Source: Convolutriloba macropyga
Taxonomy: Eukaryota
Assembly (NCBI RefSeq): GCF_964194025.1
Contig: NC_134468.1
Coordinates: 87,792,001 to 87,856,000, forward strand
DNA length: 64,000 bases
Direction: 5' to 3'
In this document: piece by piece, positions 721-38,478 of the stretch
How positions within the stretch are numbered: the first letter of the stretch is position 1
How the letters are laid out: every line of letters begins with the position of its first letter
Program-made: the position numbers and the translations under genes
The notes under the pieces: model-generated
The model's database searches: none
Seen by the model: only the letters and a program-made list of their open reading frames with translations
Told to the model about the DNA's origin: nothing

Positions 721-1170
721 ATGTAATTGTTATATTGAAGGAAAAAGTGCCATTCTTTGCGCATGCATTACTTGATTACTGATCTTCTGCGCTGTTAATA
801 AAGTGCACGTAGTTTTACCTGAAATGTGCAAGTAATCCTACTGCACAATTTACAGCTGTAGTCTAAACAACGCTGTCAAATTCGACGTGATGAAGAGATC
901 AGTAGTTACATGGTTAAGTGTCTTTTTTTATGGCATTAGCAAAAAATTCTACAATGGGAGCCAAGGAAAAGATATTTTTTTTGAAAAAAATATTGTCGTT
1001 ATACAAAATATTATAATGAGAGAGTGTGTTTCCGTGTTTGCATAACTGTTGAGTTACAAAAACTAGAAGTATCTATTGCTAGAATTGTTTGAATGTTGAG
1101 AGAAAACAACCTAATGTAATTTGTGCATGAGATAAGCTGGCACTGTCTCGAATCTAGTACTGGTCCATTT

Positions 1171-1185
1171 TCACAGTAGTTGCGC
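1171..1185 (-). CDS. Putative terminal coding exon (AQLL*)
   Basis: tacag| acceptor, then GCG CAA CTA CTG TGA in phase 0. The pyrimidine tract is weak, and the true last exon could lie outside the window. Confidence 0.4.
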   Translation of the reverse strand, partial: AQLL

Positions 1186-4100
1186 CTGTATAGATCCCTC
1201 ATGACGAATTTCATTTTTTACTACTTTTTTACTTGGTTTTAACGTGCAATGTTTTTTTTTTACTTTTTAACATAATTTTACATAATTTTTACATAATTAC
1301 AATGTTTTTATGTAAATATTATGAAATTCTCTTTTTTCCGACAAGTCATATACATAAATTTTCATATAATTGCCAATTTTTGGTTAATAATGCTAATTTT
1401 TGCAGTTGAATATAATTGAGTTTGATACTGTTTTCTATATGACGTATCTGAAGATTTTGAATATGTGTGCAATATCAGCTCGCCAACGAAGGTTAATGAG
1501 TTGGTTTGAAAGTTTTGGGGTGAAATTGTATCCAACTTTTTTTCAATTAGTATTTCCATCATTATGTTTCCATTACTTATCGAACCTTGAGCAAGGCCTT
1601 ACAGAATCCAAGCCCAGTCAACATTCACATTTTTCAAACATTTCTGAATAATTAATGTCAACTAAAATCAGCGAATCAGGGACAAATGTTTACAAAACTG
1701 ATAATACTCACAGTAAATCACAGATAAAACAGAAAATCAATGTCAAACTGCCGCATGTGAACAAAAAACCATAAGCGTGAAATTGAAATTTAGTTCAAAC
1801 AAAAAACTAGGCCTAGAATGAACTATAAATTGATTGGGAAAACCACTTACAAAAAAATCCGGTCCAAAAAATCGAAAAAAAAACTGTAAAAATCAAAGTG
1901 AAATTGCCGCATGTGAACAAAAACCACTAGCGAGAAAGCGAATTTTTGTTCCAACACCATTTTCTCACTCTACTTTAAATTTAGAGCAAAAAAATTTCAC
2001 ACCGCAAAACCACTCGCTTTTTTGGTCCACTTCCGGTATCGGCGTTACCAAAATCACTACTCCAATTTGACTTCAAAAATCTTGAAAATGTGTGAACAGA
2101 TCTTTAAAAAAAGACACCGCCCCAATACAATTCAAATTCTTTGAATTGTAACAACCACGATGTCACCAATAATAGCCGCTATCGCTTCGCGGCTATTGAT
2201 AAAACTGATAATACTCACAGGTTCTTTATGTTTATCTTTCTTCTTATCGTGGTCCGGGTCATGAGATGATGGTTGTTTTTCTGATCCATACTCGTTGTAC
2301 ATTACGACCTCCTTAGATGAGTCGCTGTGACTACTCTGGTCTTTACCCCTGTCGTCTTTCTTCTTCTTTTCATCCGCGGAGTAGTAAACCTTGTATTTGT
2401 GCCCACCATCTGCGTCATAGGCGTAATAGTAGCCACCTGAACCAATTAAGCACCATTCAAAAATTGAAAAGAGATCAATTTAACTGTTTCGAACAAGAGA
2501 TTTCGAGATCCGCAGTCACTTTTACAGTCGCAATAATTTAAAGTCCCAATAATTTAAAGTCCCAATAATTTAAAGTCCCAATAATTTCAAGAAGAATGGG
2601 ACCCGAGTCCCGAAAACGACAAGTCATTTGAAAAAAATCAACGCTATGTTTGGTTTCAAACCTAAGAAAGCTTTGGAATGGTCGGTTTCATCGGTTTCGT
2701 CCAAAAAAAAGGTTTGGTATGAATAATTTTAGAACGTAAAAAAGCTTCCGTGTGTTCGGTTACAAAAGGAAAAAGTTGTTTTTAATTCCATACTATTACT
2801 TTTTTAAAATAAATACGCGGAAATTCCAAACTTGCATCTCGGAGAATTTTGTTTTCAGAAAATGTGCGAATTTATTGAAATTTTATTAGCTCGATGACAA
2901 AACTAGTCGAAAAAAGATTTTTTTTATTTAGTTTAAGCTAAAAGATGAAACCAACATGTTAAACAAACATAACCGACTATCATTCGGCGAATTGTTCTCA
3001 AAAGATTGGCAAGCGGTTTGCTTCAGTAGAAGCCGGCTAGAGCTTAGGGCTGCTAGCATGCTAGGGGTGTCAAGCAATAGGGGGAGATATGGTTGGTAGG
3101 GCTGTACAAGAAGGGGGTCCAAATTGCCAGGTGGAGGATGGTGAACGATGGAGCGCTGTGGATGCGGGATGCGAGTGGGGGTGAGTGGCTGAGTGTAGCG
3201 GATGTTAAGCGAGTGTATCACTCTTGCCGCTCTTCACACCAACAAATTTGCTCCTCAAAACAGTTTCAGTGAATCTCATATTTAAAAACTAGTATGACAT
3301 AAGGCTCTAAGAGAGTTGCAAAGCCACATAATGCATTCCGGGCGTTAACTGTTTATCTCCCGCTTTTGAAGACAAAAATTTAAAAAGGTCAGACGAAAAT
3401 TCTGTCAAGCGAAAAACTGCATAAAAAGATTGCAGGGCTAATATAATTGCAAAATACTTTGTTGGGGAGCAATTAATTAATTAATGGCGATGCATAGGTG
3501 TAAACCGGGTTAGGAACAATTAATCAAGGGATTCAATTCACTAATTATTATTCACCGAGCCTTGATATGATTAGGAGAAAAAAATTAAATAAATTGTTTT
3601 TCTATATTTTTAAGACTATAAAAACATACCAATGACACCGAAAAAACTCAACGAGGAACTTGAAATTTTTTATGTTTGAAATCTATATTTTCTATATTTA
3701 AAATGTGTATTTTCTATAAGTTTTCTATGTTTGAAGCCTAAATTGTCTGGTGTAGGGAAAGAATTCTAAAGAAACCTGTCTTTTTCCTTCCATCACTTTT
3801 GACACTTCTAAAATTAAATTAGAGAAAGACATGAGAGTAGTGGTATTATTCTAAAACCCTTGTGGCGCGCTCATCAATAATTTCTTTGATTTATCCAACC
3901 GACATTTAGTTGAAGTTTACCAAAAATTTTCTTCATTTTTTAAAAAAATGGGCAACGTCAAACTCATGAAATAATATGGAGATACGGATATGGAGAACTT
4001 TTTCTGAATTTTAGATTTTTTTTTGTGAATTCTGCAGTAATTCAAAAAATGGTTGCATAGAAAAACATTAAATTTTTTGTTTTTCAAACCTTTTTTATTT

Positions 4101-7100
4101 AACATTAGTTTTTTTTCAATTTCTAGTATGTCGAAACATTCTGGTTTCTGACAATGTTTAATTTCAAATAAATTTTTAATGGCACTAATAGTAAAACTGT
4201 TGAATTTCAAAAGTTTTTTTATAAAAAGATATGTTATTTTACAATATCAATTTTATTCCAACAAGCAGGATTTACTTTTAGTTCAATCATTTGAACGTTT
4301 TGTTCATTAATCAAATAATGATAAAAAATGTCTTAAAAATGTTTGAAATTTTTTCCAAATATTAATTTGAGGCACATAAATGTTTTTTTTTTCAACTTAA
4401 TAAAACGTAATAAGTAGCTGATATAAGTAGGTTACTGATATGCTGCTGGGATCAACAGTCCCAAATTTAAAAAACTCAAATATATTTATATGCAAAATCA
4501 CAAAAATCACATTTTTTATATAAAATAATATGCAAAATTTATGAAAAGTGAATTTTTTGGTTTTTACGGGCTGCGAATCGAAGTGGAGCTGAGTCGCTAT
4601 TGGCAAAATTCTTGCATTTCATATTTTTGCGGTTTTGCCTACTTTCAAAGCTTTAAACATTTTATTATCAAAGGCAAACCCTTTTTCGTGATTCGACGCA
4701 CTTTTAATTTGCCAACAAAATTAATGTCAAATGGTAAATTTAAACTATCAACTAGCTTTTCTTGCTTTTTGCAGTCATTTTACATTGATTGTCACTTTTT
4801 CTCATTTTATCTAAAACGGCAACCTTCAGTGGACAAACTTTTTTAATCCTTTCCAACTTTAGTGGGGGAGAGGAACTACATTTTCAAATGTTTTTTTTGC
4901 TTTGTCAATTTTCGCCGATAGATATATTCATCGTAGAGAGATTTGTGTGGTATCATTTAAAAGCCCGTCAAGTGTAACAAATAGAATTAAAATGTTTTTT
5001 TCCGAGTTCTGTTTTTGCCAAGTAAAAATTGAGGTTTACAGTTTTGTGAGTAAAAGACCAATTACCGTTGTTTTTGTTCATATTTTTTTGTCATTTTAGC
5101 CTAATTTTTTTTTATTAATATTGCTAAAAATTGTTCAAAATCACAAGAATAGTGTTATTTTACCAATAAGGACAGAGAAGGGTTGCTGAATAGTTTGATT
5201 CGAGTTTTTTGTTAAAATTTAGCTTTATTGTTCGAAGTTCGGACTTTCTCATCAAAAATGTTGTCAAATATGCTCTCAAAGCCCATTTTTTTTAAGTTTG
5301 CCAGAAGTAGAGACCTGAAAACTGCTAACAGAATCATTTCACCTGCAGAAGAGGGCTATTTCTGTTCAAACTTCCTACAAAGAACTCCTTTAATTAAAAA
5401 ATTGGCCGGTTTTCACTAATTTAACTCGTATGTATACAAAATGCATCGTTTGTATTTGATATTGAAAGATTTCATTCGCCTAATTGTTTTTTTTGCTGAT
5501 AATTGGAAAAATTAGAGGGTTAGTGGGACCTGCAGCTACATCAGGGCTAGCTTTGTTCTCTTTGTCGAGTCTTATAGTCTAAAATTCGTTTGAAATATAG
5601 TGGGCCGCGATCTTTTTTTTTGGGAAAATTATTTGCAATTTTTAGTTTGCCTTTTTTATGTTAATTACTCAATAAAATGATTTCATAGTAATATCCAATT
5701 GAAGCAAGCCCCCTTTAACATAAAATGAGCTCCAATGAACACAAGATATTAGCTTTTGAGTTTGAGTTCATGTGTATTAAGACTCCGACAAAACGTTTTA
5801 AAAAATTTCAACTGAATTCTTGTGTTTTGCTTGCACTTACTGTTCATTTTGCAGGTTCATGAATTAGTCTCACTATATAAAAAATTTATTTAGCTGCTGT
5901 GTTTGTTAGAATCATAACAATAGCGTGTTTTCAATTGATATCTAATGGCTTTCATTACTTTGTACTTATTTGTTTTGCAAAAATAAGAGTGAAGTTCTGA
6001 ACTGTGCATCATTTATATCATCTGTAGCCTAGTCTCGGTAAAAAAGCTCATACATTTTTTCATTTGAAATAGCATTTTGTTTCCGTAAGGGTTCTAATTT
6101 TTAATACCGTTTCTCGGCTTTGGTAATACCATTTTCCTAAAAACGTTTTGATTTATTCATGATTGCCAATTTTTGAGGTTCAATTTTGTTTGCTTAGCAA
6201 TTCTCTTTATTGAAAAATCTAAGTGACGTCTAAGAAAAAGCAATGAAATTTTTTCAATTTTCTTGATGAATGTATTATGGTTTTGACTGCTGCGACACTG
6301 TTCTCTCGTAAATTTTTCAAAATTTTAAATTTTTACAATTGTTTGTTGTTGTTTTGTGGTTGTCAAAAATTTTTTTTAGCTCATCAAAAGTCTCAATTGT
6401 TTCCCTTGAAAATTAGAAGGGGCAAATTCATTAATTTCATTTTGTAGATTTTGGACTTAATGACTTTCATATAAATCATTGTCTAAAAACAAATGGGAAT
6501 TTGATGTTCTTGATTTTTTCTTGCCTCGAAATGATCATTCTTATTTCCATTATTGATCGGTCTTACCACTTTTTTGCTGAAGCAATTATTGACTAATTTG
6601 TTGTTTATTTTATTCAACTCAAGTTTATAGGGCTAAGACCATTTGTTTTTAAAAGAACTTTTATGAGTTCTCAGAAATGGTCATTGATTCATGTTCGTTC
6701 GTCTTTTTCACGTAGACCCTTTACAAAGAGGACGATTGATTATCAACTGAGATGAGAAGCAAAAAAATACCTTCAGACCATCACACTCTTAATTGTTTTT
6801 GATATCTCACAGTTTTAATGGCTTCAATACTGTGGTTTCGGAGATTAGTTCTTTTAATTTTGAGTTCTGGTCATGTTCATTGTTTTGTGAAGTCTTATTG
6901 CTTAGTCTCATTCAGAACACTCCGAATTTTACAACAACGGAGTTAAAGATTAAATTGTTTTCTTTTTCTTGTCTGTTGAAAGCTAATTGTTTTCATGATA
7001 TTTAAATAAAAAATCAGCATTATAAAATAAAATAATGATTCAGCTTTTTTAATTTTTAGCTTCTTTCGTTTAAAGGTGGCTTAGTCTCTGTAAAGACAGG

Positions 7101-10100
7101 CCGTATTTTCTTTCCAGAGAATCAAGGAGCAGTTTTGTAATTGATTTATTATCAAATAATGGTCTCTTGGCTTTGATACTACGCATTTTTATTTGAAAAA
7201 TGCCGTTTTAGTTATATGCGATATCTGAGTGTTGAAATTGTTCTTTGTTTCCTGGCCGCAACAACTAACTAATCGGAGTTTTTCGGGCTTTGACAGAATG
7301 CAAAATTGATTTTATATTGCTTGTAGTGAATTTATTACGATATATCGGCTGTGACAAGGTTTTCCTGCTAAATTTTTTTGTTTGTGCACTCTGCCCTTTC
7401 TGCAATTATTTTTCTAATTGTTACGATGTTTCATTAAGGACAAGTTTCATATCTATTTAGCGATGTAGAGGTCAATTTGTTTTTTTAGGCGTTATCTAGT
7501 GCCATTTTCATTTTGTGATTTGGTTTTTTATCAACGTTGACATCTAGTATTTTTTGTTTTTTTTTATTCTTCATATCTCGTATTTTCATCATATGGAAAT
7601 ATCAATCTTCTAATGCGGCATTACTTTCATTTAATGGTTTGTTGAACAATATAGAAATCTTTGAAATTTCCTATCTCTTCCGGTTGAATAGACCATTAGG
7701 TCAAATATGCACATGAGCGGGGTCGGAACATTACGTGTAAAGTCACATTACCGAGCATCCGCGTCTCATTTTAAACGCTTTTTCCGATTCCACTAATTTT
7801 CAGATCACCTTTTTAAACAAATAAGAAAAACATAGCCGGAAAATTGCCGAAAATAGCGGCAATTGCTTGTTTGCTTCCATGAATCAAAACAACTAATAAA
7901 ATAATATAGACAGATTGACCACCAGTCATTAATAGACCAACGGAATTTTTGGTTAGATCCGGCTGTCATTTTTAAGTGACATATAGACTCTTTGAGGATA
8001 AAACACTGATGAAGTTTTGTCAAAACTAATATTTCAAATACAGAACTCAAGTCTCTTATACTCAATAATTGGTTCATATACGTTTGACACTACCTAGATG
8101 CACACTATTGACCTTTAACTAGTAAATTCTCATAAAATTTAAAGTTCCAGAAATGAATTCAAAAGTCGTTTTTAATTGAGTTAACTCACACAACTGAACT
8201 TAAAGCAGAATGATGTCATGCACACAAACATTAACTGCAATGCACTAGAAGTCACTGCAGTTATTGAAAAAGTCAATTCCAAGAAGTCATGTAGTAAGAA
8301 TTGCCGATGGAGACGACGAATTAAAAAAACATAGAAGGACGAGTCCAGAAAAACAATTGAATAAATTGTTTGACAAATTTAGAAGTGCTTTAGCAGACCA
8401 CCAGAACAATTGAATAATGCCAGCCAAAACACAAACAAAATCTTTTTCATTTGAAAGAATTGAGAAACTGAAACAATCAAACAAACTAAACAAAAAAATA
8501 CTCAATGCCAAAACTCTTGAAGCTTTTACCCCGCGGGTAAAATTTGATCTTATTAAATGCACCTATTTCAAAAATATGTTCAGTTTCAATTTGTCTCTGA
8601 AATAGGCAAGGATTATATCTGCAAGACATGAAAAAAACTCATTGACTCTTGGTGATCGATTAACTCAGAAAATGGAAGACGATTTTTTTTTTAAAAAAAG
8701 AAATTACAAATTCTAAAGAAATTTTGCCAAAAATTGTGATATTAATATTATCAGAATCCTATCTTTGTCTCTAGAGGCAATCCAGTAACCCAAATCCAGG
8801 CCTTTAGAATTTCACTGGCTCGTTCTGGAAAACTATTCCGCTGCCCCCTACGAAAGCTAGCAACTGTGTAACAACAGACTATGTAACCCTGGAGAAAGTT
8901 ACTTAACTAAACCGGCAAGAAAAACTTAATAAAGACAATGTTTTTAAAAAAATGCAAAGTTTATCAAATACTTCTAAAATTCCAATGTTAAATTGTAGAA
9001 AAAAATTTTCTAGACGTTAGCAACTATGAAGTATCTTTTTATCAGACGGTGGAAGAAGTTTTATGTCACTTGAGAATGGACAAATATCAAAAATCGACGA
9101 AAATTTTAGGAAAACTTAAAAAAATGACAGACTTTATGAAAAAATTTTATTATTGGAAACATTAAAGAGTTGAAAATTTTTCCATTCTTACTAGAAACTA
9201 CGCAGTGACCTATTACCAAACCCTAAAGGAAAACTTTCAAAAAACTTGAAGAAAAAGCAAAAATTAGTATCATTTTGAGTTTTTGTGTTTGTAGTACCCT
9301 TACATACAGCTCAAAGAATGCTCATAAAAAGTAATTTTTTCTCGCAAATGACCTTTATCAGCATTGGAAAACTTCAATCTAACTGCAATAAAACATAAAA
9401 CTAAAAAAAACATGAAAAATTGCACCATTTTGAGCCCAAAAACTCCAAAAATTGACCTTTTAAACTTAGATTGATGCCATCTGGGCAGCTTTATTTTTCT
9501 GAGTTTTTCGACGACAAATAAAACCTACTCTGAACCTCTAATGAAACCTGATGCCCGCTTGGCTTTTCCTGATTGTCCCGTTTTGAAATATCAAAGTCAT
9601 TGAAAAGTGTGTGAAGACATCTAAAAAAATATACCAGGAAAAGCCTTTAGGCAAAATTCATGTGAATGTATTATTTATAATCTGACACCAATTACTCCAC
9701 TTTAAAAGGCAAATGAGGGCTGTTAGTGCTGAGACTAAAAATTTCAAATTTTAATTTTTCAAAAAGACAGGATCAACATAAAAAAACTGCTATTAAATCA
9801 AACAGCCAACTTTATTTCTCTTTTGCTCAAGAGCAACCTGTCAAAAATTGTCAATTAGTCTCACTAATAACATTAAATGATAAGACAAAAATGACCAAAA
9901 TTGCAATAAAACTCGCTGAAGCTTTTTGAAAATATTTGGTATAAAAGTCACAGAACGCAACAGCTACTGAAGGATTCAATTGCATCAATTAATTGAGTCC
10001 CCCAATGGCCACAATTGAGACCTATCATCAATTAGAGTAAGTGATATCTCAACAATAGTTATGCTAGTTTTTTTATCTCAACAATAAAAAACTAGCACAA

Positions 10101-13100
10101 CTAAAAAAATTCACGAAGATTTTATTAAGAAACAAACAAGCGTCCTAGTCACAAAAAGTAATAGCTATGAACTGAAATGACTTGTTCTTATTGAAGCCTT
10201 TTTAGCAATCAGTGAGATCTCTCAATTATGAGACTAAGAATTAAGATGACACAGTTGAAAAGAAAAATTCGGAAAACTCCAAATTCGATAGTTTTTAATG
10301 AAAACAATTAGTGTCGAAGTCATAGAAAGCACTAGATGAGAACAAAAACGATTAATTGGACAAACTTTACCCCTATAAGCAGCATCAAAGACTTGTCCTC
10401 AATGAGATTAAATGATAAGACATCAAACAAGTCAATAATTACTTGCAGAACTTTATATTCAAAGAAATAAGAAAAAGTATTTTTGAGAAAAAGTAGTGTC
10501 AAAGTCATGAAAACCACTAGCACCAATACAATTCAATTTGTTTGTTTTGTAAAATTGCAGCGCCACAATACAATTCAAAATTGTTCAATTGTAAAAAAAA
10601 CCTCGATGTCCCCAATAATAGCCTATATCCCTTTGCGGCTATTAATAAAACATATTTCAATACATTTTCTTCATAAATTTTTCTTCCCTCTCAATCGATG
10701 TCACCTCTTTCTAAATATTCTACTTGAAAAAATTTCTGTTTTCGTTGCTGTATTGCATTATCACTGGAACATTAACAGGTAGATCAGAACCCATATCCAC
10801 TTCGGACATGTTTGCTCAATCTATTTTATTTACTAATGCGTTGGTTCTTAATTATTTTTCATCCCCTAGCTAAAAAATGATTCCGTGGCGAAATATACGG
10901 TACATGCCATGCTCTAGCACCCGATATTACGACAATAAATAAAGAAAAGGGTTTCAGGTTCTATCGCCACAAAATTATGTCTCCGATGCATTGGGAAAAG
11001 GTCTGAATGAGTCGAAATTGAAAAGAAAAAATCAACATTCCTTTTTTCTTCTTTGACTTCCTCCTCTTCTCTCCATATGTCTTGTCCCTCTTTTTCTTCT
11101 TGCTTCGATGACGATGTTTCCTACTCTGTTTATGACCTGAAACAGTTCACTATAAATTTTCAGAAGTTGTAAATCAACATTGAAAAGTCTTTTGTTCAAC
11201 CGCTTAAAAACCATGCTCAGCCCAACCTGCTTATAAAAATAGTTAAAACTTCACTCGATCAGTTACAGAGAGTTTAATAGACAAGTCATCACTTAACCCC
11301 CCCCCCCCCCCCCCCCCCCACCTCCACCCTCCCTCACTAAAAAAATGTTTATAAGTAAAACCTGGGTGCTAATAAGAATTAAAAACATAAAACGACTAAA
11401 GTCGGGTGAATTGATCTCGAACAACAGTCGTGGGTTAATTAACTTAGAGGGGTTGTACCTTGGAAAATTTCAATGGGTGCAGAAAAAAACGCACGTACAG
11501 GGGATCGAAATGCTGACCTCCAAATTAGCAGTCCCAAATATTTACCCCCCAGCCACATTATCTTTGACTTCATTTCGCCCATGATCACTTTTACAAACGA
11601 ATTTGAATTGAAAACGAGAGGGACTTAGATGAATCAAAAATGAACAACTAAAGTGTGAAAAAGTCACCCGAAAAATCAAGACACGTTCCAGAACAAAAGT
11701 TCCAGAGGAGAAGTTTGAAATTGAAACGTAAAGAACTGCATAAAATGTTCTTAATGCTATATAACACTGGCTGGGCAATAGCGGAAAATATCTTTAGGTT
11801 CAACTGATCTGTTGTTAAGCTTCACTTTATTTTAGTTGAAAAAATTCATTTCAAGAGAATGAAAACTCGCTGAGCATTACGTTTACTAACCGTGTCCGAA
11901 CGTAATGCTCCTTCCAGTTTGTGCTCAATTAAGCGTATAACAAACGAATGCAACATTAAGGAAAGAAAATTAATTGAGGTTGCTCTTCGTGGTCGATTAC
12001 AGAAAACAAGGTTAACCGGATCTATTCTGTTTCTTGCTCTTTGCTCTTGCTCTTGGAAAATTCAAACCATTGGGTCCTCTTGGAAAATTCAAACCATTGG
12101 GTCCTCATTGGGTCCTACCATTCTCTCATGGGCATTGCGAGACGCAGCTAGTGAATAAGCTGAGCCTATTTGTTTTCTATTGAGTGAGTTTATAAAAACA
12201 GAAACATTCCCTGCTGAACTCGAAAGAGCGGACATCACTCCACTTTTTAAAAAAGGAGACCTTGATGATCCTTTAAACTATCGACCAATTTCGTCAACAC
12301 CAGCATTAGCAAAACTTTTTGAATCTCTTAGTAAACAATAAATTGATGAAAATGTTCATAAGAATGCCCTGCTTTCTAAAACACAGTTTGGTTTCAGAAA
12401 AAAATTTTCTTCAACAGATGCGCTCGTTTATTTAACTGAAAAAATAAAATGCAACAAAAACGAGAAAAAAAACTGCAGCAGCATTTTTAGATCTATCAAA
12501 AACTTTTGAGTCCATTAATCACGAGCTCATGATTATAAAAGCTTTCCATTCTTGGATTTTCGATACCAGCTCAAAATCTATTTATGAGCTATCTTTCAAA
12601 CAGAACACAAAGAGTCATAATCTGTTAGCGCCACTTCAGACCAGCTAGAAAAGCCATCAGACAGCAAGAAATAACTTTTGAAATTGAAAAAACTTAGAAT
12701 TTGTCAAAACTCAAAAATGGTCAAAAAAGAAAAATTTTACAAGTTGGGACCGAAATTCTGTACACCACCCCCCCCCCCAATTTTGGGAAGGCAAAACCCG
12801 AGCAACCCGAGGTTATGGCAGACGGTTAGGGTTACCTCTAAGCTACTCATGGACCCAGCGAACATTATTGCATCAGACCCACAAGTGTGGCTATTAGCAC
12901 TTAAATGGTGCAAAATTGGCATTTTTCGATATTTTGTTATTTATTATTAATTTTCTTAAGTCGTTTATTTTATGATACTTTAGATGATCACTAAAGGTGA
13001 AATACCGTACATTCGAGGCATTTAGAGCCACGTAATAACCATCCCTGCTTATGTCAACAAAAGCAAATATTGCAGTAATTTGACATTTACTATGTAAACA

Positions 13101-16100
13101 ATGACCTAAATCATTTTCTTGATTAACCAATCAAAAACAAGTAGCGATGATGTTATAATTGATAAATATTTGATTATTTACTTTAACCCAATTGTTTGAT
13201 TAGTGAAACCGTATTGTATTTAGAACCATTAGAAACTGTTACCAAGAGCAGTTGGCTCTCAGATTGACTAAAATCTGATTCTTGAACAACTTTAGTCTTT
13301 TTGCTAAGTTTTGCTAGATCTTAAAATCTTGCGAGTTCTAAGTTAGTTGAGCTTACTTAACGAGAAGTTAGCAACATTACTAACACTTGTTGAAGCTTTA
13401 CGAACTTCAGCACAAGATTGAACATAGACTATCACTAAGGATTTACTTAACTTCAATCAACAAAATTAAAGTTACAGTCCTTTATTACGTCCGAACGACT
13501 CATTATTTGTGCAAGATGGTTAGTCAATCGAACCCAGTGAAAAACCAGGCCGGCTTAAAACTCGAGAACCAGGCTGTGATATATCGGTTCCGCTAAGATT
13601 CTTGAGCAGCCGCAACATTTGTTCCGCTGACCCGGACAACAACAACAGCAGTGTCACGAACAGCAACAAATCTTCGATTCAACCTGGTGGACCAAAACAC
13701 AACCAGCAACGATGGCCAGCAAAAGTCCCAACAGACACTGGAAGACAGCTGATTGGAAGGCAAGTGGTCAACTCAGGACATTAGAGAAAGAGCAAGCTGA
13801 CCTACTCAAGTCCTTCTCCAGACACCTCAACGAGCTAGAAGGCTACCTGACACAAAACAAAACAATGACGGCCGAAGGTGCTTATCGATGTTTCTTCGAG
13901 ACGTACAACAGCTTGGAAGACAACAGAAAACAGCAAGGTTACTATTAAAACCAAAGTATTTTGAAAACTTTGACAATGACACCAAGCGTATGTTAGAAGA
14001 AAAGAGTAAAGTTTTGCGATGGGTAGTTGACAAAATACCAGATCTCCAAGATATTGAAGATTGTCGCGCAGTAGTCGTCGACTACCGGAAAAACACATTG
14101 CGATGGTACAATAAATTGGAAGATTCTGTTCCAATCGAGAACGAATTGGTAGAACTCGAAAAGAATTGGTAGAACTCTTAAATCAGAAAATTTAAGCGAC
14201 TCTGAAAAACAGATACTGTGCGATCAGGCGGAACGGTTATTAGAAAAGCGAGATGAAATTTGCGCAGAAGCTATTTCAATATTGAAGATAGAAATTGTTC
14301 CCATGGGTTTGCGAAATTCAGTAAAGCTAGGAGTCACAATCAGGACCTGCTCAAACAGTACAGGCTCAGCAAGGATTGTGGAAACCAAACATCGTTAGTG
14401 TCAACTACATCGACTGGTGACAAAGACCCAAACGACGAAACTGTAATTGATACAAGAAAGGGAGCAATAGAAAACGCTGAGGAGAACGCGGAGGTCTCTT
14501 CCATGCATTCTGCTACACATGGAAGCCGAAAACAACCCAGTATCGCCGACTCGCGATCATCAAAGAGGCGAGAGATCGAAGAAATGGAGCACGAAAACTT
14601 GAAAGCAAAGAGAGAAAAAGAGCAACGACTGCTAGAGCGCCAGTTGGAGTTAGAGCGGGAGCGTGAAGAAATAGAACTTCGTCGCCAGCAAGAAGAGTTA
14701 CGTTTACAACAGCAACAACAACAACAACAGCGGCGAGAACAAGAGTTACAACAACAACAAAGAGAACAAGAGTTACAACAACAACAACAAGAGCAAGAGT
14801 TACGTCTAAAGATGCAACAGCAAGAAGGTGAACTGCGTCTTCGACAGCATGAGCGAACACTTGAAAACGAAAGAAAGAAAGCAGAAGAAGAAGAAGAAGA
14901 AGAAAGACGTATGAAACTTGAGCTGATCAAAGGAAGCTCAAGAGCTTTTGGATCAGTTGCAGATGAGATAGACAGTGTTGGATCAAAACGAACTCACGAA
15001 GGAAGAGCCGGGTGGGCAGAATCAGTGGCTCAACAGTCTGTCCCTAGACGGCCACTATCTCCAAATCTTGTTATCGACCCTCCAACGAATGTCACCAAGG
15101 ACAGAGCTGACAAACGTTTCAGCACCTACCCGAAAACTACCCTGCTGTTCCAACCAGGCGAAAGACTTTTTCAAAGCAACTGGCTGAACCGAGTTTTCTC
15201 AAGAAACCAGAAGTCCGTAAACCAATTAGAGTAACGGACCCACCAGCACCACCGTTGACAAAGCCGACGTTTCAGCAGCAGGGAACGTCAGCAGTTCAAA
15301 CTAAAAACAGGAGTCAGAGTCCCATTAACAACTCTCGAAACAGGTCTGCCGAGAATAGAAAAAGGAGCACAATGAATCACACCACTCCCCAAGTCATTTA
15401 CCAACCAGTACCAAGCAGTGGTACCAGTGGCTTGCCAGAACTAAAACTGACTGACTTTTCAGGAGATCCTCTGGAGTGGTCAGAGTGGTCAGGTCTCTTT
15501 GATGTTGTTGTTCATCAAAAGCCAATCAGCGATACAGAAAAGATGCAATACCTGAAGATCAGTCTCACGGGTCAAGCGAAAGCAGCAATATCAGGAATGG
15601 GATTCAGCTCACGATCATACTATCATGCTTGGGAAAAACTCTGTGAGAAATATGGCAGATCAGATTTCATAGTCAACGCGCAATTTAAGAAAATACATAC
15701 TCATCCTCCAGTTCGACATGACGATTCTACGGGCATCGTCAAATTCGCAAGTTTGGTTACAAATGTGGTAACACTTTGACTCAACTTGGATACACATCCG
15801 ACCTAGAATTAGAAGGAGGGCCAAGCTCAACAACGAGAAAATTTTCTCCGCAACCGAGAGAACAGTGGTTGCAATAAATGCAAGATCGTCGACTACTGAG
15901 AGGCAATCGGATTTTTTTCAAAGAGCGGCTGGCCTCCAAAGCTGTAATTCATAAGAACCTGTTAGCACAGACAAACTCGTCATTTGACAGAAACAAATTT
16001 CAAAGCCGTGATAAACTGAAGACGAGTACTTTTTCTTCAAACGCTGAAGAGTCAAGCAAATCCAAGAATTTTGAATGTCCCTTCAAATACAGACAACATC

Positions 16101-19100
16101 CTATTGGGGCGTGTGAAAAGTTTAAATCACAGAAAGTAAATGAACGACGAGAGCATGTCCAGAAGTTTTGACTGTGTTTCAATTGTTTGAAACCAGGTCA
16201 CATGTCGAAGGACTGCAGAAGCAGGACATGCAGTGTACCCAGCTGTGGAAGGCGACACAACAGGTTTTTGCACAGCGACCTACCGAAGGAGGAAACTACA
16301 AAGAATGTCTCAGATGCTACAACAGCATTAGCAACTAACATCACCCAAGGAGGACTCCCAGTGATACGAATCAAGCTGACAAACAGAGACTTAAGCCTAA
16401 ATGTACTAGCAATGTGTGATTCGGGATCCTCAATCTCATTTGTAGACAAGTCAGTGGTGTCAAAACTCCAACTCCAAGGCCGAAAAGCATATCTATCAGT
16501 AGCAGGGATCCATGGATCACAGGATGTAAAGACTGAAATAGTGTCGACAGCTGTGTCAGCCCATGAGAAGTCTCGACCATTGCCAACAGTGCAATTCTAC
16601 GTTCACGAAAAACTGAAATTGGGTGACCAGATTGTAGAGCTGCAAGAGTTGAAAGACCATTACCCACATTTGAGAAATTTGCCAGATCAGAGCTACAATC
16701 TAAACGATGTTCAGGTGATTCTTGGACAAGATTGTTACGATAATCATCACTCTTTTGAATTCAAGAAGTCAGAAGACAAAACTGCACCATGGGCAGTGAA
16801 ATCGAAGATCGGCTGGGCCTTAAGTGGTCCGCAACTCTTGCCACAACAGCAACATCAATTGCCGATGCCAAACTAGCAAACCAGTTGAGTAAGTGGAGGG
16901 ATATCGAATCCTACGCTTCAAACTGCGATGTCACCGGTCATTCGAAAGAAGAACAACGAGCGATCAAGACCTCGGAGCAAACAACTTGATTCAATGGTGA
17001 AAGATACGAAGTTGGACTTCTGTGGCAAGAGGACGAAGTGAAGTTACCGCACAACTTTTACTCTGCAATGGGGCAGCTCAAGTCCCTGGAACGACGCCTA
17101 CAGAAAGACGAGACGCTACGAAAGCGCTATCAGAAAACCATTGACACGGATGTCAACGCTGGATACGTTCGGAGAGTAGATCAAGCTGAACTGAATGAAA
17201 CAAGAGACAAACTGCAATGGTATTTTCCACATCATCCCATCATACACCCGCACAAACCCGAAAAAGTTGGAAGAGTGTGCAACAAATGACAAACTTCTAC
17301 TTTGGCCAGACCTGTTGCAGAGTCTTATCGGAATTATTTTTCGCTTCCGAGAACACCAAATAGCTTTATCAGCCGACATAGAAGCGGTTCAGCGAAACTT
17401 CTACATGGACGATTTCCTCAAGTCAGTCAGAAAACCTCAAGAAGCGATTGAAATCTACCAGAAAGTCAGAGAGATCCTTAACAAAGTTGGATTCAAATTG
17501 ACGAAATGGATAACAAGTGACGATGAAGTCAAGTCACAAATCCCAGAGACAGACAGGTCAACGAAAGTTGTGAAAACTTTCGAAGCAGAACCACAATTAT
17601 CTTCAATCCTAGAACTCAACTGGAATGTGGACGCAGACAGGCTTATAGTCTGTCGTGAAACTGAGCAAGAAGTTCCACCAAAAATAACTCAGAGAATTGT
17701 CCTATCCTTTGTCTCAGCAGTGTTCGACCCACTTGGGATATGTTCACCCTTCACCATACGAATGCGATTTCTACTCCAAAGCATTTGGGCAGCAATGGGA
17801 CACGCATGGGACAAAGCTTTGTCAGCAGAACACTCAAAACTGTCCAGTAATTGGTGCTCTGAGTTGAGGGAAATAAGAACCATGTCAATAAATCGACTTT
17901 ATTTTGAAAACGGATGCACAAACCTGAGACTTCACATCTTTACAGATGCATCAGAGGAAGCGATGTGCATCGTGGCATATCTGCAAAACATAGCAACGTT
18001 GAAACTTTTATATGTGGTAGGGAAATGCCGTGTGGCACCCATTAGACATATGACAATACCGAAGTTAGAACTTCAAGCCGCAGTCTACGGAGTTCGGCTC
18101 AGAGAGCAGATACTTAATAATGAACATGATGTCAGAACTGACAAAATCTATCTTTGGACCGACTCATCAACAGTGCTACAGTGGCTAAAGGCAGCGCACA
18201 AGAAACAACAAGTATTCGTTGCGAACAGAGCAGCGGAAATACTGGAAAACTCATCGATGGATCAATGGAGACACGTCAAAGATGCGAAAACCCTGCCGAC
18301 ATTGGAACCCGAGGAATGTCTATCGAAGGGCTCAAAGAGTCCGTACGGCTAAACGGGCCGGCATGGCTCCAGGCAGATGAAGAAAAGTGGCCCAAGCCGT
18401 GGTGCCAAGATAATGAACTCGAACCTGAGCAAGTTATGAGTACTGTAGCAACAGAAAATAAACTAGACCAACTGTTTGACTGGAGACAATACAGTTCCTT
18501 CTGCAAGACAAAACAGAAGGGTACCCTCAAAGCAGACGAAATTCATCACGCAGAGCAAATACTGTTTCGGTTTGTTCAAACCGAAAGCTTCCCGAATGTT
18601 TCGAAGTCTATAGCAAACAGCAAAGAAATCTCCAAAACTTTAAACATTGCCAAATTGTCGTCCTTCATAGAGGAAGATTGAACAATTAGAGTGAAAAGCC
18701 GACTGAAGCATTCAAACCTTGAATACAATGCAAAACATCCAATATTGTTAACAGCAAAACATCCAGTTGTACAACTTCTGTTGGAAAGAGCGCATCGAGA
18801 CAACCTAAATGAGGGCACAGAATACGTGAGAAACATGCTCCAACAAGAATACTGGATCATCGGGCTGAGAAATGCATTAAGAAAAATCAAGTCAAGATGC
18901 ATCAAGTGCAGACACAGAAACGCCAACCCAATTCATCCAGCGATGGCAGATCTAACCCGAGAACGACTTGACGAACATGTGTTCCCATTCACTCATAGCG
19001 GATTCGACTACTTGGGAACCTTCGAAGTCAAGTTCCTACGACGTACCTTGAAAAGATGGTGCTGCCTTTTCACTTGCCTGACAACCAGAGCAGTACACAT

Positions 19101-22100: not shown

Positions 22101-25100
22101 CATGGTTCAATTACTTGGAAACATTTTAAGTTCAATTAAATTTTTTTCTGTTTTCTATTGAATTTATGTTACTGTCGTCCCTCCCCGCCAATACAAATGA
22201 CTTCTCTCTTCGGTCGATATTTTAGTTATTATAAATTATTAGTTTCTCTGTTGTAATTATCAATACTCTACACTGCCTATCTCTGTAATTTTTACTATGA
22301 CTGAAACATTTACAGATATTAGGAGAACTACAGTGTTCGTTTTTTTTGTTTCGCTCCCTCCCCCCCCCCCCCCAGTGTGTTTTATGCCCCCGGTTACAAA
22401 TTATATGTTGTTATATAGCACGTTAGTATGTAAGAAAAAAGCATGTGCGCCTGTGGGTCATAAAAGATTTATGCGCACTAAGCTGGGGGGGGGCAGAATA
22501 GATCCAATTAACCATTATGGTACAATTGAATTGAAGCTATTAAATCCTAGTGTCCTTATAATCACGTGCGCATTTTTTTTCCTTTTTTTATTATTGTTGT
22601 GCTGTCGAGAGTATCTCTTTATATTTTTTTCTTTTTTTTCTTTGTGTGTGGAAGGTGACATGCAGAAGCTACCAAAAATTCCCGCCATCAACAGTTTCAT
22701 TGAATAATGCAAATAGATTACTACGGCTGTAAGAGAACTTCACAAGGAACTATTATCTATGAGTTTTGTTTCTTTTTTTTCTGTTTGGTTTGACAAGAAA
22801 TTCAAACTGCGCGAGCGCGCAGAAAAATATTTACAACAAAAACTGTGAACCGAAAATTTTGCATCAAGAAGAAAACTTGCACGAATACTGTTGTTGCTTC
22901 AGAATTCCTTCAAATTTTTTGGTACGATTATTTCATTTTACCCGTCAATTACTCAATCACCACTGCCACTGTTTTCTGAAGTTTTTTTCATACTGAACCT
23001 TGGAAGCAACCGACGACAATATGCAGCACAATTTCTGTGAAAGTTAAACAGAAAATCCTTACTTTAAAACAGAAAATAAAGCAGAAAATAAAACAGACTT
23101 AAACAGAGTGTCCTCCTTCTCTCATACTCATATACTCTGTCAAACTGTCAACACAAATTTCAAAACAAAGTGGAGGTTTGAATCTGGCATTTTGGAATTT
23201 TGACAACTCTCAGTTTTGGAAATTTGAACTAATGTCAATATTGCTGTTCGAAAGAAACTTTGTTTTTTCATTTTTGTTTTGCTTACTTAACCATTAGCAC
23301 TGCTTGCCGTCTTCCGAAATAATTAACTGGAAACATTTTTTTTTCAAAATGCATTCAAATGCATACAAACTTATGTATAAAAAAAGTCAAGTAACGGTGA
23401 ACAAACAAAAAAAATTACAGACAAAAAATGTACACAACAGGCACTGGCAACAATGGAGTGCCATCGATAGACTCAAATAACTACTATGGAAGTATTATGA
23501 AGCATAAGAAAAGGCAACAGATATCGACTAACGTCAAAAGAATCTCATCAAAATTTACCATGACTGAATATTTTTTTCCAATGCTGTCAAGATTTTTTTT
23601 CATTGAGGAACTTGAACATCTTTGTGATGGTCTAGCATAACACCACAGAAATGTTGTCAAATCGCAAAAATACTGAGGCTTGTGAATGTTATCTAACTAA
23701 CATAGGCCAAAAAATGAGTGACTCTGAAACGAATGGCAAGTGTTTGGCTTCGGTAGTACCCAGCTGAGGCTCAGAGATGCTAGCATTGATGGGGATGAGA
23801 ATGGGGGGGGGGGGGGGGTGAGTGGAGTGTGGGGGATTCAAGCGATTGAGGAGTAGAAATGGGACTTGGGGGTGGTGCGTGACTGGGGGCGTGACTGGGG
23901 GGGGGGGTTGGGGTGAGACTGGGGGATGGCTGATGGGGGGCGTGGACAAAAACTTTCTTAAATCACATTAAAAGGACCACAGGACTAATATAATTGCTAC
24001 AAAAGTTGCTTCAGAGCAATTAAGAGTGACGATGAATGAGCTTGGTAATGTTATTTTGTAAATTGTCGATTTGAAAACAACGGAAACAATCTGCCCCAAA
24101 TTATTGATTAGAAGTCGACGAATTTTTCAAGTTAGCTGAATCCGCAGTATCTGTTTTTCATAAACAATAAGGTGGTGTGTGAATAATATTTACAATTCAA
24201 GACAATTCAGCTTCGGCTCTGTGGCGTAATGAGCTGTTTGTTTTAAAAAATTCAATAAATTATAGGAAGTGTTTTGGAATCTGGCGGATTAGTTATAAGT
24301 GCGACTAGAAAAATGGGCAAAAAATATCGCTCTTCCACAATAACAGAAAATTCGTTGACACGTTACGCGCAAATTAATGCAAATTTTGCACTGCCCGAAC
24401 CAAGTTCCAAGTCTAAATCAGGACTAAGCAAGTCTAAATGCAAATTTTATGCCGTTTTTCAGTAATATGAAAACCGTAATTCAAGTCTTACAAGTCTTGG
24501 CCAAGACATGGGTAACATTTGGATTTTCGTTGGTTTTTTGTATTTTATCAAATTTGCCCAAAATCAGCGACAATACCAAAATCACCGAGCAAATTGCCAT
24601 TCCTCGTCGCTAATCTCGGCAGCACTTTCTAGCGACAAAATCACTGCAAAAGTCAAGGGACTAGATTAGAGTCAGCGACAAGATCAAAGGATTAGAATCA
24701 ATTACTTTTGTCGCTAGTATTCGCGCACGAAAACCTGCGACCTATATACCAAAATTTGAAGCTGTCAGACCTTTTCGGGCTCTTACTTTCCTGATCTTAA
24801 TACATGTGCTTAAAATAGATGCGTAAAACAGTGACGAGCCGAGTATATGGTCGAACAAATGTGCTTTTTACAATGTAATGCAAGTTGATTCCATGAGTCA
24901 AAACTAAATTTTCAAAAACTGTTGAGCGAAAATTTTGAATTTGAAAAAAATTTTGAAGCGTGCCACGATTTGGGCGTTAATTTTCAGCTACTTTCCCGGG
25001 GTGCTTACATAACACCCAACAGCCGTCCAAAACAGTCAACTAGCACCGCGGGGGGGAGGGGTTTAGATTTGCACTTGCGATTAAATTTGCTGAGTACCGA

Positions 25101-37100: not shown

Positions 37101-38478
37101 CTCATGCCTTGCTCTGCTGTTATTTGCGGTGAAATAAATATTTCACCAATCGCATTTCTCGTACGATCAAAATAGGATTTGTACACAATTTAGTTCAGCT
37201 ATCACTCTAAGCCGAAAACACGTTTCACAGTTCAAAACACTAATTAATGGACGAACTGTCTTCAATTTCGTTTCGTAAATTCATTGTATTCAGCATTTAT
37301 TGTATCAATACATTGTATCAATACTTTTTAGTTTTAGAAATCTTGTGATTGTTTATTGCAAATTAGTGTAATAAAGTGTGACAAATGTGTTTTCGGCTTA
37401 GCGTCATAGCTGAACTAAATCATGTACACCCTACTTTTGTTTGATCGTACGAGAAATTCGATTGACGAAATATTGATTTCGCAAATAACAGCAGAACAAG
37501 GCATGAGTTATCCCTCTGCAAATAACGAAGTGTACAATTTTTGCCGTTATCGGAAATCGTGTTGAGTAGAATCTTTCTTGAATCAACCCGTCCCCCTCCC
37601 CCTGCCACCACCACCATCGCAACGCACTATATCGAACCGCATTACACCAACTCAACAACTTATTGGGCATTACTTATTTTTTAATGGAATTTGTGACATC
37701 GACAGCAATGAGGGGGCGAGGAAGAAGGGGCATCATAATAATAGATCCAAGATGCCGCTTTAATAGATCCAAGATGCCGCTGACCAGAATTAGATTTGGT
37801 GTCCCGCTTTTTCACCCCTATTCATTTAACCGCCTATCATTTAACCCCGATTTGTTCACCCCTGTATCATGTAACCCCTCTCTCTTTTAACCCCTCTATC
37901 ATTTCACCCCGATTTTAATCTTTCTATAAAATAAGGACTTAAATTAGCAATATAATCATTTGGCCATGCCTCGCGGGCCATGGCCATGCCTCAGCGGCCC
38001 GTGAGACTTGATATGAAATTATCACAACCGAACATGGGATTAATTTATCCACTTAATTATGACAAAACATGCCTTTAATGTCGACTGCTAATTGGCGGGA
38101 TGAAATGATAGAGGGGTGAAATGATAGAGGGGTTAAATGATAGAGGGGTGGAAACGATAGAGGGGTTAAATGATAGAGGGGTGAATAAATCGGGGTTAAA
38201 TGATAGAGGTTAAATGAATAGGGGTGAAAAAAAGTAGAACCATTTATTCTACAATGGCGGGAGAGAGGGGAGGGGCAGCTAGTTCATTTTATTTACTTCT
38301 TCTCATTCGAATTACTGTTTATTTACTTTTTCTCATCTCCCTCCTCGATTAGTTCATCTTTTGCCGCAATCTGTTCATCATGGTCCTCTTGTTCTACAGC
38401 GTTTTCTTTGATGGTGTATTTGGGCTTCTTAGAGGACTGTTTTGAAGTCTCTTTGTCTTTCTTCGAACTCTTTGTCAT
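1171..38478 (-). CDS. Spliced host gene, 7 coding exons: 38478-38327, 29554-29307, 26609-26391, 25554-25276, 11136-11041, 2436-2219, 1185-1171; 408-aa charged, Tyr/Gly-rich low-complexity protein of unknown function
   Basis: Six purine-rich islands plus a short putative last exon, each preceded by a CAG acceptor. Donors are gtaaat, gtaagt, gttatt, gtatga, gaatgt and gtgagt. Exon lengths 152/248/219/279/96/218/15 give intron phases 2,1,1,1,1,0 and one uninterrupted frame, MTKSSKKDKE...KKKDKHKEPAQLL*. An in-frame TAA lies 12 nt upstream of the ATG. Confidence 0.8.
1714..2200 (+). mobile_element. SINE-like or 5'-truncated retroposon with 3' hairpin and 20-bp TSD
   Basis: Direct repeat aaaactgataatactcacag at 1694-1713 and 2201-2220; terminal hairpin aatagccgc-N9-gcggctatt at 2171-2197; homologues at ~28770-29185 and ~10520-10643. 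Confidence 0.75.
2219..2436 (-). CDS. Host gene coding exon 6 (GYYYAYDADGGHKYKVYYSADEKKKK...KHKEP)
   Basis: ggttcag| acceptor in phase 1 and CCT|gtgagt donor in phase 0; repeats the YYSAD motif of exon 4. Confidence 0.85.
2531..2590. repeat. 16-bp tandem repeat (caataatttaaagtcc) x3.5
   Basis: Directly visible. Confidence 0.95.
2960..3225 (-). repeat. Dispersed repeat, possibly non-autonomous Helitron-like (copy 1 of 3)
   Basis: Diverged similarity to 23694-23950 and, inverted, to 40905-41162. Confidence 0.5.
3740..7760 (-). mobile_element. Highly decayed non-LTR retrotransposon (R2/NeSL-like RT pseudogene)
   Basis: Minus-strand remnants occur in RT domain order: LFLQNK (~5970), SPDVAAGP (~5540), ITLFL..IFS (~5150), DKAKKTFENV (~4895), Q.GDSAPLRF (~4590), ISVTY (~4435), IELKVNPAC (~4275). 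There are many stops and frameshifts. A homologue lies at ~43850-45830. Confidence 0.55.
10520..10643 (+). repeat. 3' fragment of the hairpin-tailed SINE-like family
   Basis: ccaatacaattcaa...aataatagcc...gcggctatt, as at 2120-2197. The element may extend further upstream. Confidence 0.65.
11041..11136 (-). CDS. Host gene coding exon 5 (HKQSRKHRHRSKKKKRDKTYGEKRRKSKKKK)
   Basis: tgtttcag| acceptor; same basic-cluster and TYG vocabulary as exons 3-4. The end is inferred at AAG|GAATGT (non-canonical donor). Confidence 0.7.
12160..12622 (+). pseudogene. 5'-truncated CR1/L2-like LINE, RT N-terminal part
   Basis: Translates as FPAELERADITPLFKKGD..DPLNYRPIS, QFGFRKKFSSTDAL, AAAFLDLSKTFESINH, YLSNRTQRVII. 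Confidence 0.9.
12623..13617 (+). repeat. 5' LTR of BEL/Pao element
   Basis: TGTT...AACA termini; roughly 95% identical to 19919-20908 by manual count; followed by PBS-like tgttccgctgacccgga. Confidence 0.95.
13712..19970 (+). pseudogene. BEL/Pao gag-pol polyprotein, disrupted
   Basis: ORF fragments from 13712 to 19970 carry Pao-type motifs (KCRVAP, IPKLEL, NPADIGTRG, CLTTRAVHIEV, DGVVRSARVK) and are broken by stops and frameshifts. Confidence 0.95.
19919..20908 (+). repeat. 3' LTR of BEL/Pao element
   Basis: Copy of 12623-13617 (TG mutated to TT), preceded by purine-rich gaaaacagggccggcga. Confidence 0.95.
20909..22140 (+). pseudogene. CR1/L2-like LINE, RT C-terminal part (continuation of 12160-12622)
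   Basis: INNVKS...QGVP*GTVLSPLLFNLFVNDL...QYADDT...LKINQDK...YLGV / IDKDLKY. Confidence 0.9.
21272..21964. repeat. Long inverted repeat, arms 21272-21496 and 21740-21964
   Basis: The 225-bp arms are reverse complements with about 10 mismatches. Confidence 0.95.
22335..22506 (-). mobile_element. Degenerate MITE related to 35691-35874
   Basis: gcatgtgcgcctgtggg...cactaagctggggg matches the reverse complement of 35725-35780. Confidence 0.6.
23694..23950 (-). repeat. Dispersed Helitron-like repeat (copy 2)
   Basis: gtagtacccagctgaggctcag and tcaagcgattg are shared with the reverse complement of 40905-41162. Confidence 0.55.
25276..25554 (-). CDS. Host gene coding exon 4 (KQPDEDNKEG...RYYSAD...YTEDAE)
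   Basis: ttccttgtttcag| acceptor and AAG|gtatga donor; 279 nt, phase 1-1; lies within ORF 25211..25702. Confidence 0.85.
26391..26609 (-). CDS. Host gene coding exon 3 (GEEKNKKGKKGRKKRSSTRTYG...YEETPDK)
   Basis: ttgtcccag| acceptor and AAG|gttatt donor; 219 nt, symmetric phase 1-1, open in the joined frame. Confidence 0.8.
26630..26817. repeat. Degenerate AT-rich minisatellite (aaaattggaacttg units)
   Basis: Directly visible, just upstream of the exon 3 acceptor. Confidence 0.8.
26860..27528. mobile_element. Non-autonomous Tc1/mariner-type DNA transposon (MITE)
   Basis: ~45-bp TIRs ctcgaccgttttgacttctgacatttacgcccctg / caggggcgtaaatgtcagaagtcaaaacggtccag, flanked by TA on both sides. Confidence 0.85.
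28770..29185 (+). repeat. Copy of the hairpin-tailed SINE-like family
   Basis: Colinear with 1790-2197, including the terminal aatagcc...gcggctatt and an A-run. Confidence 0.85.
29307..29554 (-). CDS. Host gene coding exon 2 (YEQGNQEEKAEAQEDEGEIKPYGDG...EEINNKE)
   Basis: cccag| acceptor and G|gtaagt donor; lies within ORF 29272..29565. Confidence 0.85.
29904..30893. mobile_element. Non-autonomous TIR element with internal tctgatcaga palindrome arrays (possibly nested, inner element 30005-30817)
   Basis: Outer IRs attctgc/gcagaat and ataacttttacg/cgtaaaagttat; inner IR cccaggt/acctggg; many (gg)tctgatcaga and tcgagcgcac units. Confidence 0.6.
35691..35874. mobile_element. MITE with TIR ggatcttttccgtttg
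   Basis: Perfect 16-bp inverted termini followed by C/G runs; relatives at ~22335-22506 and ~31150-31220. Confidence 0.85.
36366..38252. mobile_element. Composite foldback-like element with 17-bp subterminal repeats (tctatcatttaacccc / ggggttaaatgataga)
   Basis: Repeat arrays at 36376-36430, 37810-37912 and, inverted, 38095-38230; 11-bp direct repeat atttattctac at 36366-36376 and 38242-38252. Confidence 0.7.
36990..37628. repeat. Long imperfect inverted repeat (arms ~36990-37229 and ~37378-37628), MITE-like
   Basis: For example gggataactcatgccttg / caaggcatgagttatccc and taagccgaaaacac / gtgttttcggctta. Confidence 0.9.
38327..38478 (-). CDS. Host gene coding exon 1 (MTKSSKKDKETSKQSSKKPKY...EEGDEK)
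   Basis: Acceptor cag at 38494-38492, ATG at 38478, donor AA|gtaaat in phase 2, which matches the next exon. Confidence 0.75.

Follow-up and report, generated by a model that had tools for sequence, protein, structure and literature searches.

A real, single-copy, lineage-restricted protein-coding gene occupies about 36–37 kb of the minus strand, with introns filled by transposable elements (TEs), in the stretch of the Convolutriloba macropyga genome analysed here (C1:87,792,001–87,856,000; 64,000 nucleotides, hereafter the window, from whose start all positions are counted). Six of its seven modelled exons stand out from their surroundings by frame, composition or conservation, and both alleles of the species keep them open. 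Taken as a whole, we consider it moderately probable that this is an orphan gene with a GA–AG intron whose product is a disordered polyampholyte acting as a component or scaffold of a nuclear or nucleolar body.

Gene model and haplotype comparison

The gene model was rebuilt base by base from the minus-strand exons, open frames and splice phases, and it reproduces the seven exons of the original prediction, which join in frame to exactly 408 residues (404 from exons 1–6 alone). Exon 1 (38478–38327) opens with the ATG at 38478, preceded 9 nt upstream by an in-frame TAA that had also been reported, and encodes a hydrophilic N-terminus of about 50 codons rich in K, S, E and D; its donor, AA|GTAAAT in phase 2, fits the acceptor of exon 2 (29554–29307; 248 nt), which begins in phase 2 and ends in phase 1 at G|GTAAGT. 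Exons 3 (26609–26391; 219 nt) and 4 (25554–25276; 279 nt) are both phase 1-1 units, the former carrying KKGRKKR and then a YG-bearing acidic block before the donor G|GTTATT, the latter carrying RKHRRK, YYSAD and RHRRRSKK before the donor G|GTATGA. The 96 nt of exon 5 (11136–11041) encode the basic block RKHRHRSKKKKRDKTYGEKRRKSKKKK and are followed by a non-canonical donor, G|GAATGT. Exon 6 (2436–2219; 218 nt) contributes GYYYAY, YYSAD and a tail rich in His, Lys, Asp and Ser, and ends in phase 0 at CCT|GTGAGT. The proposed exon 7 (1185–1174) consists of the four codons AQLL after an in-phase CAG, with a stop at 1173–1171. All six motifs quoted in the original prediction lie on the minus strand within open frames.

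The main exons form islands of higher GC content (0.40–0.51, with flanks at 0.25–0.44) and high purine content (0.63–0.80). When a composition model trained on exons 2–4 was used to score the 1152 open frames that the two strands of the whole window contain, exon 6 ranked 4th, exon 1 ranked 7th and exon 5 ranked 11th, all above the 99th percentile.

The chromosomal genome of C. macropyga (1,175.98 Mb, heterozygosity 3.65%) was published with no annotation alongside, and RNA-seq data are deposited under PRJEB75559 (PMC13650328). No RNA evidence was reachable, and the second haplotype of the same species, 2–6% diverged, was therefore used as the test. Its exons 1 and 2 lie on contig C1193 (G000:C1193) and the rest on ctg34119 of the ENA assembly ERZ25071359, which was reached from an open reading frame (ORF) call overlapping exon 4 and then followed along via TE proteins; an exact look-up of nine small ORFs as a route to the other haplotype found one repeat ORF alone on record.

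Pooled over the six main exons, the haplotypes differ at 18 of 1212 positions, against 415 of 10858 in the aligned intron flanks (odds ratio 0.38, p = 6e-6), which is 2.6-fold fewer substitutions in exons than in flanks. The six exons contain no indel, where the flanks contain dozens. Nine of the 18 exon changes are synonymous, with 21% expected (p = 0.006), and in exons 2–4 synonymous changes outnumber non-synonymous ones 6:3 (p = 0.004). Across the 404 codons of exons 1–6 no stop interrupts the second allele, which carries nine replacements.

The signal is distributed unevenly along the gene. Exons 3 and 4 together hold 6 differences in 498 nt (four synonymous, R>P and A>G), against 137 in 2292 nt plus 98 gap columns in their introns (Fisher p = 9e-7); exon 3 alone has 1 difference in 219 nt where introns differ by 6%, and exon 4 alone has 5 in 279 nt, four of them synonymous and one A>G, with no indels. 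Exon 5 is unchanged over its 96 nt, its flanks differing at 54 of 1065 positions plus 81 gap columns (chance of 0/96 = 0.007). In exon 2 there are 3 differences in 248 nt, two synonymous and one D>E (flanks 67/2983), and the two haplotypes do not differ at the splice sites of exons 2–4 or in the 20 nt to each side of them. Exon 6 has 3 differences in 218 nt (one synonymous, R>K and G>D) and no indels, beside flanks with 90 in 2951 and many gaps. Exon 1 has 6 in 152 nt, two synonymous and four non-synonymous, with 67 in 1567 nt of flank (67 mismatches over a 1719-column alignment, less exon 1); its frame and ATG are intact in the allele on C1193.

Fewer exon substitutions, the lack of exon indels, the synonymous excess and two open alleles together identify a translated gene under moderate purifying selection, with support that is strong for exons 2–5, consistent for exon 6 and absent for exon 1. 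A rough estimate puts the ratio of non-synonymous to synonymous rates at about 0.3, within the range of disordered proteins. We accordingly regard exons 2–5 as firmly coding, exon 6 as probably coding and the membership of exon 1 as plausible. In a genome of such high heterozygosity (3.65%), the comparison of haplotypes can stand in for absent RNA and absent relatives: here it separated the firmly coding exons from the guessed one and fixed one exon boundary within 5 bases.

Directly upstream of the exon 1 ATG, the AT-rich stretch at 38660–38480 (minus strand) contains TATA-like motifs and is a putative promoter and 5' untranslated region (UTR). It is the least diverged stretch of its block, with 1–5 differences in every 150 nt where the block averages 5.9%.

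The join between exons 5 and 6

The reading frames of exons 5 and 6, and the pattern of haplotype differences around the boundary, make a GA–AG intron the most likely link between them. Intron 5 so defined (11040–2437, minus strand) is 8.6 kb long and contains a decayed non-long terminal repeat (non-LTR) element; its counterpart in the other haplotype exceeds it by about 4.7 kb, giving a range of 8.6–13 kb. GA–AG is the sole join that preserves the Tyr-rich frame of exon 6, and both the GA donor and the acceptor CAG are present in the two haplotypes. Exon 5 is identical between them up to the G|GAATG boundary and is bracketed by differences, with mismatches at −8 and −23 and a 2-nt insertion at +6. 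This insertion, five bases into the intron of the other haplotype, abolishes the sole nearby GT (11036), and any tail translated by read-through would change frame because of it. The donor GAATGT departs from a good GTATGT donor at +2 only. The original prediction had described exons 3–5 as symmetric phase 1-1 modules, which is true of exons 3 and 4 and extends to exon 5 only with the GA donor.

Three other ways of ending exon 5 were tried and rejected. Use of the GT at 11036, which the other haplotype lacks, would cause a frameshift with a stop after 8 codons. A 13-nt microexon with the donor GTAGGA at 11123 is in frame, but it leaves 83 intronic nt unchanged where the local rate is 5% (chance 0.014). 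The 2-nt indel conflicts with a terminal exon 5, whose tail it shifts. The two ends of intron 5 do not pair (z = −0.19), and hairpin closure is not present.

Within the set of papers searched, none dealt with non-canonical splicing in acoels. The boundary of exon 5 offers an independent, selection-based case for GA–AG splicing in these animals, across a very long, TE-laden intron. Oikopleura dioica has non-canonical G*–AG introns, which intron 5 resembles in starting with GA and ending with AG; it differs in its great length (8.6–13 kb) and in ends that do not pair.

Two further features were seen around this boundary. The first 41 nt of intron 5 past the 2-nt indel (10995–11035) are identical between haplotypes that differ by 5% there, and may represent a splicing control element for the GA donor. 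Short direct repeats also occur (11012–11040, 11165–11183 and 2462–2473): one copy of AATGTTGATTT lies 35 nt ahead of exon 5 and another at the GA donor of that exon, and TCTTTTCAATTT lies 18 nt into intron 5 and again 25 nt before its end. These repeats may be a trace of the origin of the exon or of the intron.

The protein, its relatives and competing explanations

The 408-residue product is a near-neutral strong polyampholyte with segregated charges and almost no hydrophobic residues. It contains no Cys or Trp, 2 Phe, 26 Tyr, 8 YG dipeptides, YYSAD twice and GYYYAY once, in exact agreement with the counts first reported. Charged residues make up a fraction of 0.45 and balance to a net charge of 0.00 (92 K+R, 91 D+E), Lys dominating Arg (73 K and 20 R). 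Mean Kyte–Doolittle hydropathy is −1.85, and the longest hydrophobic run is 3 residues. Five or six clusters of Lys, Arg and His, among them KKGRKKR, RKHRRK, RHRRRSKK and a 27-residue K/R block, alternate with acidic blocks bearing Tyr and Gly. Set against 2000 shuffles of the same protein, charge segregation has a z of 5.2, YG occurs 8 times where 2.5 are expected (p = 0.001), and runs of at least four K/R number 5 where chance would give 0.8. The alternation of acidic Tyr-bearing blocks with basic clusters described in the original prediction is borne out by this segregation and by the recovery of every quoted motif. Its picture of a disordered, charge-blocked, Tyr-bearing protein likewise stands at the level of composition, through the shuffles and hydropathy; on that composition the chain is expected to be intrinsically disordered. 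The predicted lack of a signal peptide agrees with a fully hydrophilic N-terminus: no hydrophobic stretch occurs at MTKSSKKDKETSKQ..., nor at the alternative start MHPRYEQ....

Homology searches returned no relative outside the contigs of this species, in line with the earlier statement that no family could be recognised. An exhaustive HMMER search with exon 4 over 1.84 billion representatives matched ORF calls on the species' own contigs only, six exon peptides found no match in Pfam at E<=10, and the ESM Atlas gave nothing usable. Querying a word index with the exon 6 frame, a search limited by protein length, likewise gave no hit. No exon has a paralogue in the 1.18-Gb genome, where second copies are haplotigs only. 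With no detectable relatives and a single copy, the gene therefore looks lineage-restricted, as had been proposed. The further proposal that it was built by exon duplication, with a vocabulary shared among exons, did not survive testing: in 15 pairwise local alignments of the exon peptides, each with 500 composition-preserving shuffles, no pair beat its shuffles (best p = 0.04, for exons 1 and 2; all others p > 0.2), and only the sharing of YYSAD between exons was mildly unusual (p = 0.013).

As to function, the K/R clusters, segregated charges and Tyr/Arg content lead us to favour, tentatively, a multivalent component of the nucleus or nucleolus. K/R clusters that follow the pattern K-K/R-x-K/R are classical signals for import into the nucleus, the disordered regions of nucleolar proteins typically combine long K/R blocks with D/E tracts, and blocky polyampholytes with aromatics, such as the N-terminus of Ddx4, self-associate. 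In the mechanism we envisage, the chain would be intrinsically disordered and its repeated K/R clusters would act as nuclear targeting signals, the longest having a nucleolar form. Blocks of opposite charge would attract each other electrostatically and create many weak contacts, reinforced by Tyr/Arg contacts, and the basic blocks could also contact nucleic acid; through these contacts the protein would form part of a nuclear or nucleolar body, or scaffold one.

Several points weigh against the combined picture of a nuclear scaffold encoded by this seven-exon gene. Localisation, disorder and self-association are read from composition only, and Lys-rich basic clusters are also found in cytosolic and secreted proteins. 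Searches of sequencing runs with exons 3–4 and their introns, and with exon 4 alone, returned DNA-like entries from one study only, in a search with no positive control for RNA of this species; four of those runs, aligned to 900–3700, proved to be genomic contigs. A collection of 15 billion proteins includes none with exon 4 that derives from a transcript or is annotated as spliced. Exon 6, taken alone, is not significantly more conserved than its flanks (p = 0.21). The two ends of the model carry the remaining difficulties, since exon 1 diverges at the flank rate (3.9%, with four of six changes non-synonymous) and exon 7, which forms the 3' end, is an unsupported guess.

These difficulties at the ends are what a real gene with another transcript structure would account for, starting at an ATG at 29565 without exon 1, or ending by read-through or in another 3' exon. 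Exon 1 is unconstrained, and the alternative ATG (29565–29563) lies just upstream of the exon 2 acceptor, in the frame of exon 2 (MHPRYEQ...), with a stop four codons upstream and with the ATG conserved in the other haplotype. Exon 7 amounts to four codons after an arbitrary in-phase AG within a repeat, where contig depth is about 7,000–56,000, against about 40 for unique DNA; it coincides with no local drop in haplotype divergence, and no AATAAA or ATTAAA occurs on the gene strand downstream until 597. This part of the original prediction is not supported; the protein may instead end by read-through from exon 6 to a stop at 2137–2135, gaining 28 TE-derived residues. Against such a structure, the donor phase of exon 1 fits exon 2, its composition ranks it above 99% of open frames, neither haplotype disrupts its frame or ATG, and the stretch just upstream is unusually conserved. 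At the other end, the CCT|GTGAGT after exon 6 is a strong donor at which composition changes abruptly. We judge a different transcript structure somewhat unlikely. Far less credible is a silent or dying gene, inactivated or never transcribed, in which the GA donor of exon 5 would be a disabling mutation. The failure to find an RNA entry or a transcript-derived protein would agree with it, as would the non-canonical donor and the heavy invasion of the introns and 3' end by TEs. However, both haplotypes keep six frames open without an indel, the exons are 2.6-fold less diverged with a synonymous excess, and the GA is common to haplotypes that are 5% apart around it, next to a perfectly conserved exon 5; because of this signal of selection, a silent or dying locus is the least probable of the explanations considered.

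Two other explanations accept the gene and place its product elsewhere. A heat-soluble protein of the cytosol that shields other proteins or membranes under stress, as Hero, LEA and dehydrin proteins do, would suit a chain that is extremely hydrophilic and charged, lacks Cys and Trp, is rich in Gly and Lys and has DEYG-like motifs such as NEYGSE; the host is a photosymbiotic shallow-water animal facing light and oxidative stress. Yet no exon matches a Pfam dehydrin or LEA model even at E<=10, and the five strong K/R clusters resemble nuclear import signals rather than dehydrin K-segments, which makes a shield unlikely. A secreted precursor, or a matrix or adhesive protein with a missed signal-peptide exon, is less likely than a cytosolic shield, and we regard it as distinctly improbable. 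Its basic clusters would be convertase sites and its tyrosines sulfated or oxidised for cross-linking, and the many di- and multibasic sites, the Tyr in acidic contexts as at sulfation sites and the position of exon 1 as the least supported exon all fit; richness in Tyr, Lys and Gly recalls flatworm eggshell and mussel adhesive proteins. Neither candidate N-terminus is hydrophobic, however, the chain has no Cys, and neither intron 1 nor the sequence upstream showed a composition-matched open frame that begins like a signal peptide.

Returning to the nuclear reading, a bolder form of it, which we put forward as an unlikely but coherent scenario, supposes that the gene is young and specific to Convolutriloba, that it may have been born de novo, and that purine-rich sequence gave rise to it. 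Its product would be a self-coacervating polyampholyte with Tyr/Arg stickers, forming a lineage-specific nuclear or germline body, and its expression would need an 8.6–13 kb GA–AG intron to be spliced by a permissive spliceosome. The protein is in itself one more lineage-restricted, charge-blocked disordered protein; interest in it would rise if it were to build an acoel-specific body, such as one in neoblasts, in the germline or in cells that bear symbionts.

Genomic surroundings and known systems

A hyper-abundant repeat of about 485 bp (1716–2200; strand not assigned) begins 18 nt past the end of exon 6 in both haplotypes, flanked by a 20-bp target duplication (2220–2201 and 1715–1696) that includes the GTGAGT donor. 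Contig depth within it reaches about 2.5 million, where unique DNA has about 40. The palindrome AATAGCCGCGAAGCGATAGCGGCTATT lies inside this repeat, of which diverged copies (85–88%) occur in intron 1 of the same gene. Beyond the window start, no further exon of like composition was found within 28 kb. About 29–30 kb past the start, on the minus strand at C1:87761845–87763207, acidic Ser/Glu-rich frames are followed by a hydrophobic, folded-looking stretch; these frames probably belong to the next gene on the same strand.

The introns differ between haplotypes in their TE content. In the reference haplotype, intron 4 holds a BEL/Pao long terminal repeat (LTR) retrotransposon and its surroundings (11697–23099; ORFs at 14260–19227, plus strand) with Pao peptidase, RVT, DUF1759 and DUF5641 domains; this stretch is absent from the other haplotype, which has about 1.2 kb there. 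The other haplotype carries in the same intron (ctg34119, L019:2000–13500; insertion at about 23935) an env-bearing Ty3/gypsy-like retroelement of about 11 kb, whose ORFs encode a 429-residue gag-like protein, a 1847-residue pol (RVT, RNase H, integrase) and a 780-residue protein matching the Monjiviricetes_fusion glycoprotein family. The identical 429-residue protein on four contigs suggests recent activity of this element. In intron 5, additional diverged (84–86%) copies of the non-LTR element contribute about 4.7 kb to the other haplotype (L024:8303–13017, corresponding to window positions 6590–8821). Upstream of the gene, 39000–64000 is a field of TEs with Pao-type (DUF5641) and RVT_1 fragments, and two minus-strand ORFs of equal length, 292 residues (48088–48966 and 52922–53800), lie without a Pfam match in a region of strong GC skew.

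Among known proteins, the N-terminal region of the germ-granule helicase Ddx4 shares with the acoel protein the alternation of opposite-charge blocks of 8–25 residues, charge segregation far above shuffles, over-represented aromatic–Gly dipeptides (YG here), the presence of Arg and the near absence of hydrophobic residues. The two have no sequence similarity, and the acoel protein favours Lys over Arg, uses Tyr instead of Phe and has no attached folded domain such as a helicase. Nopp140/NOLC1, the N-terminus of nucleolin and treacle likewise alternate acidic tracts with K-rich blocks, carry multiple clusters resembling import signals and are of low complexity over their full length. The acoel protein is much shorter, matches no Pfam model of these proteins and lacks LisH, RRM and GAR regions, and its acidic blocks are built from Glu, Asp, Gly and Tyr and not from poly-Ser/Asp/Glu. 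Dehydrins, LEA proteins and animal Hero proteins resemble it in lacking Cys and Trp, in their richness in Gly, Lys and Glu, in having Tyr in DEYG-like contexts and in predicted disorder. It differs from dehydrins and LEA proteins in having no profile match and no K-segment or S-segment, and from all three groups in that its basic clusters are Arg/His/Lys runs of the import-signal type.

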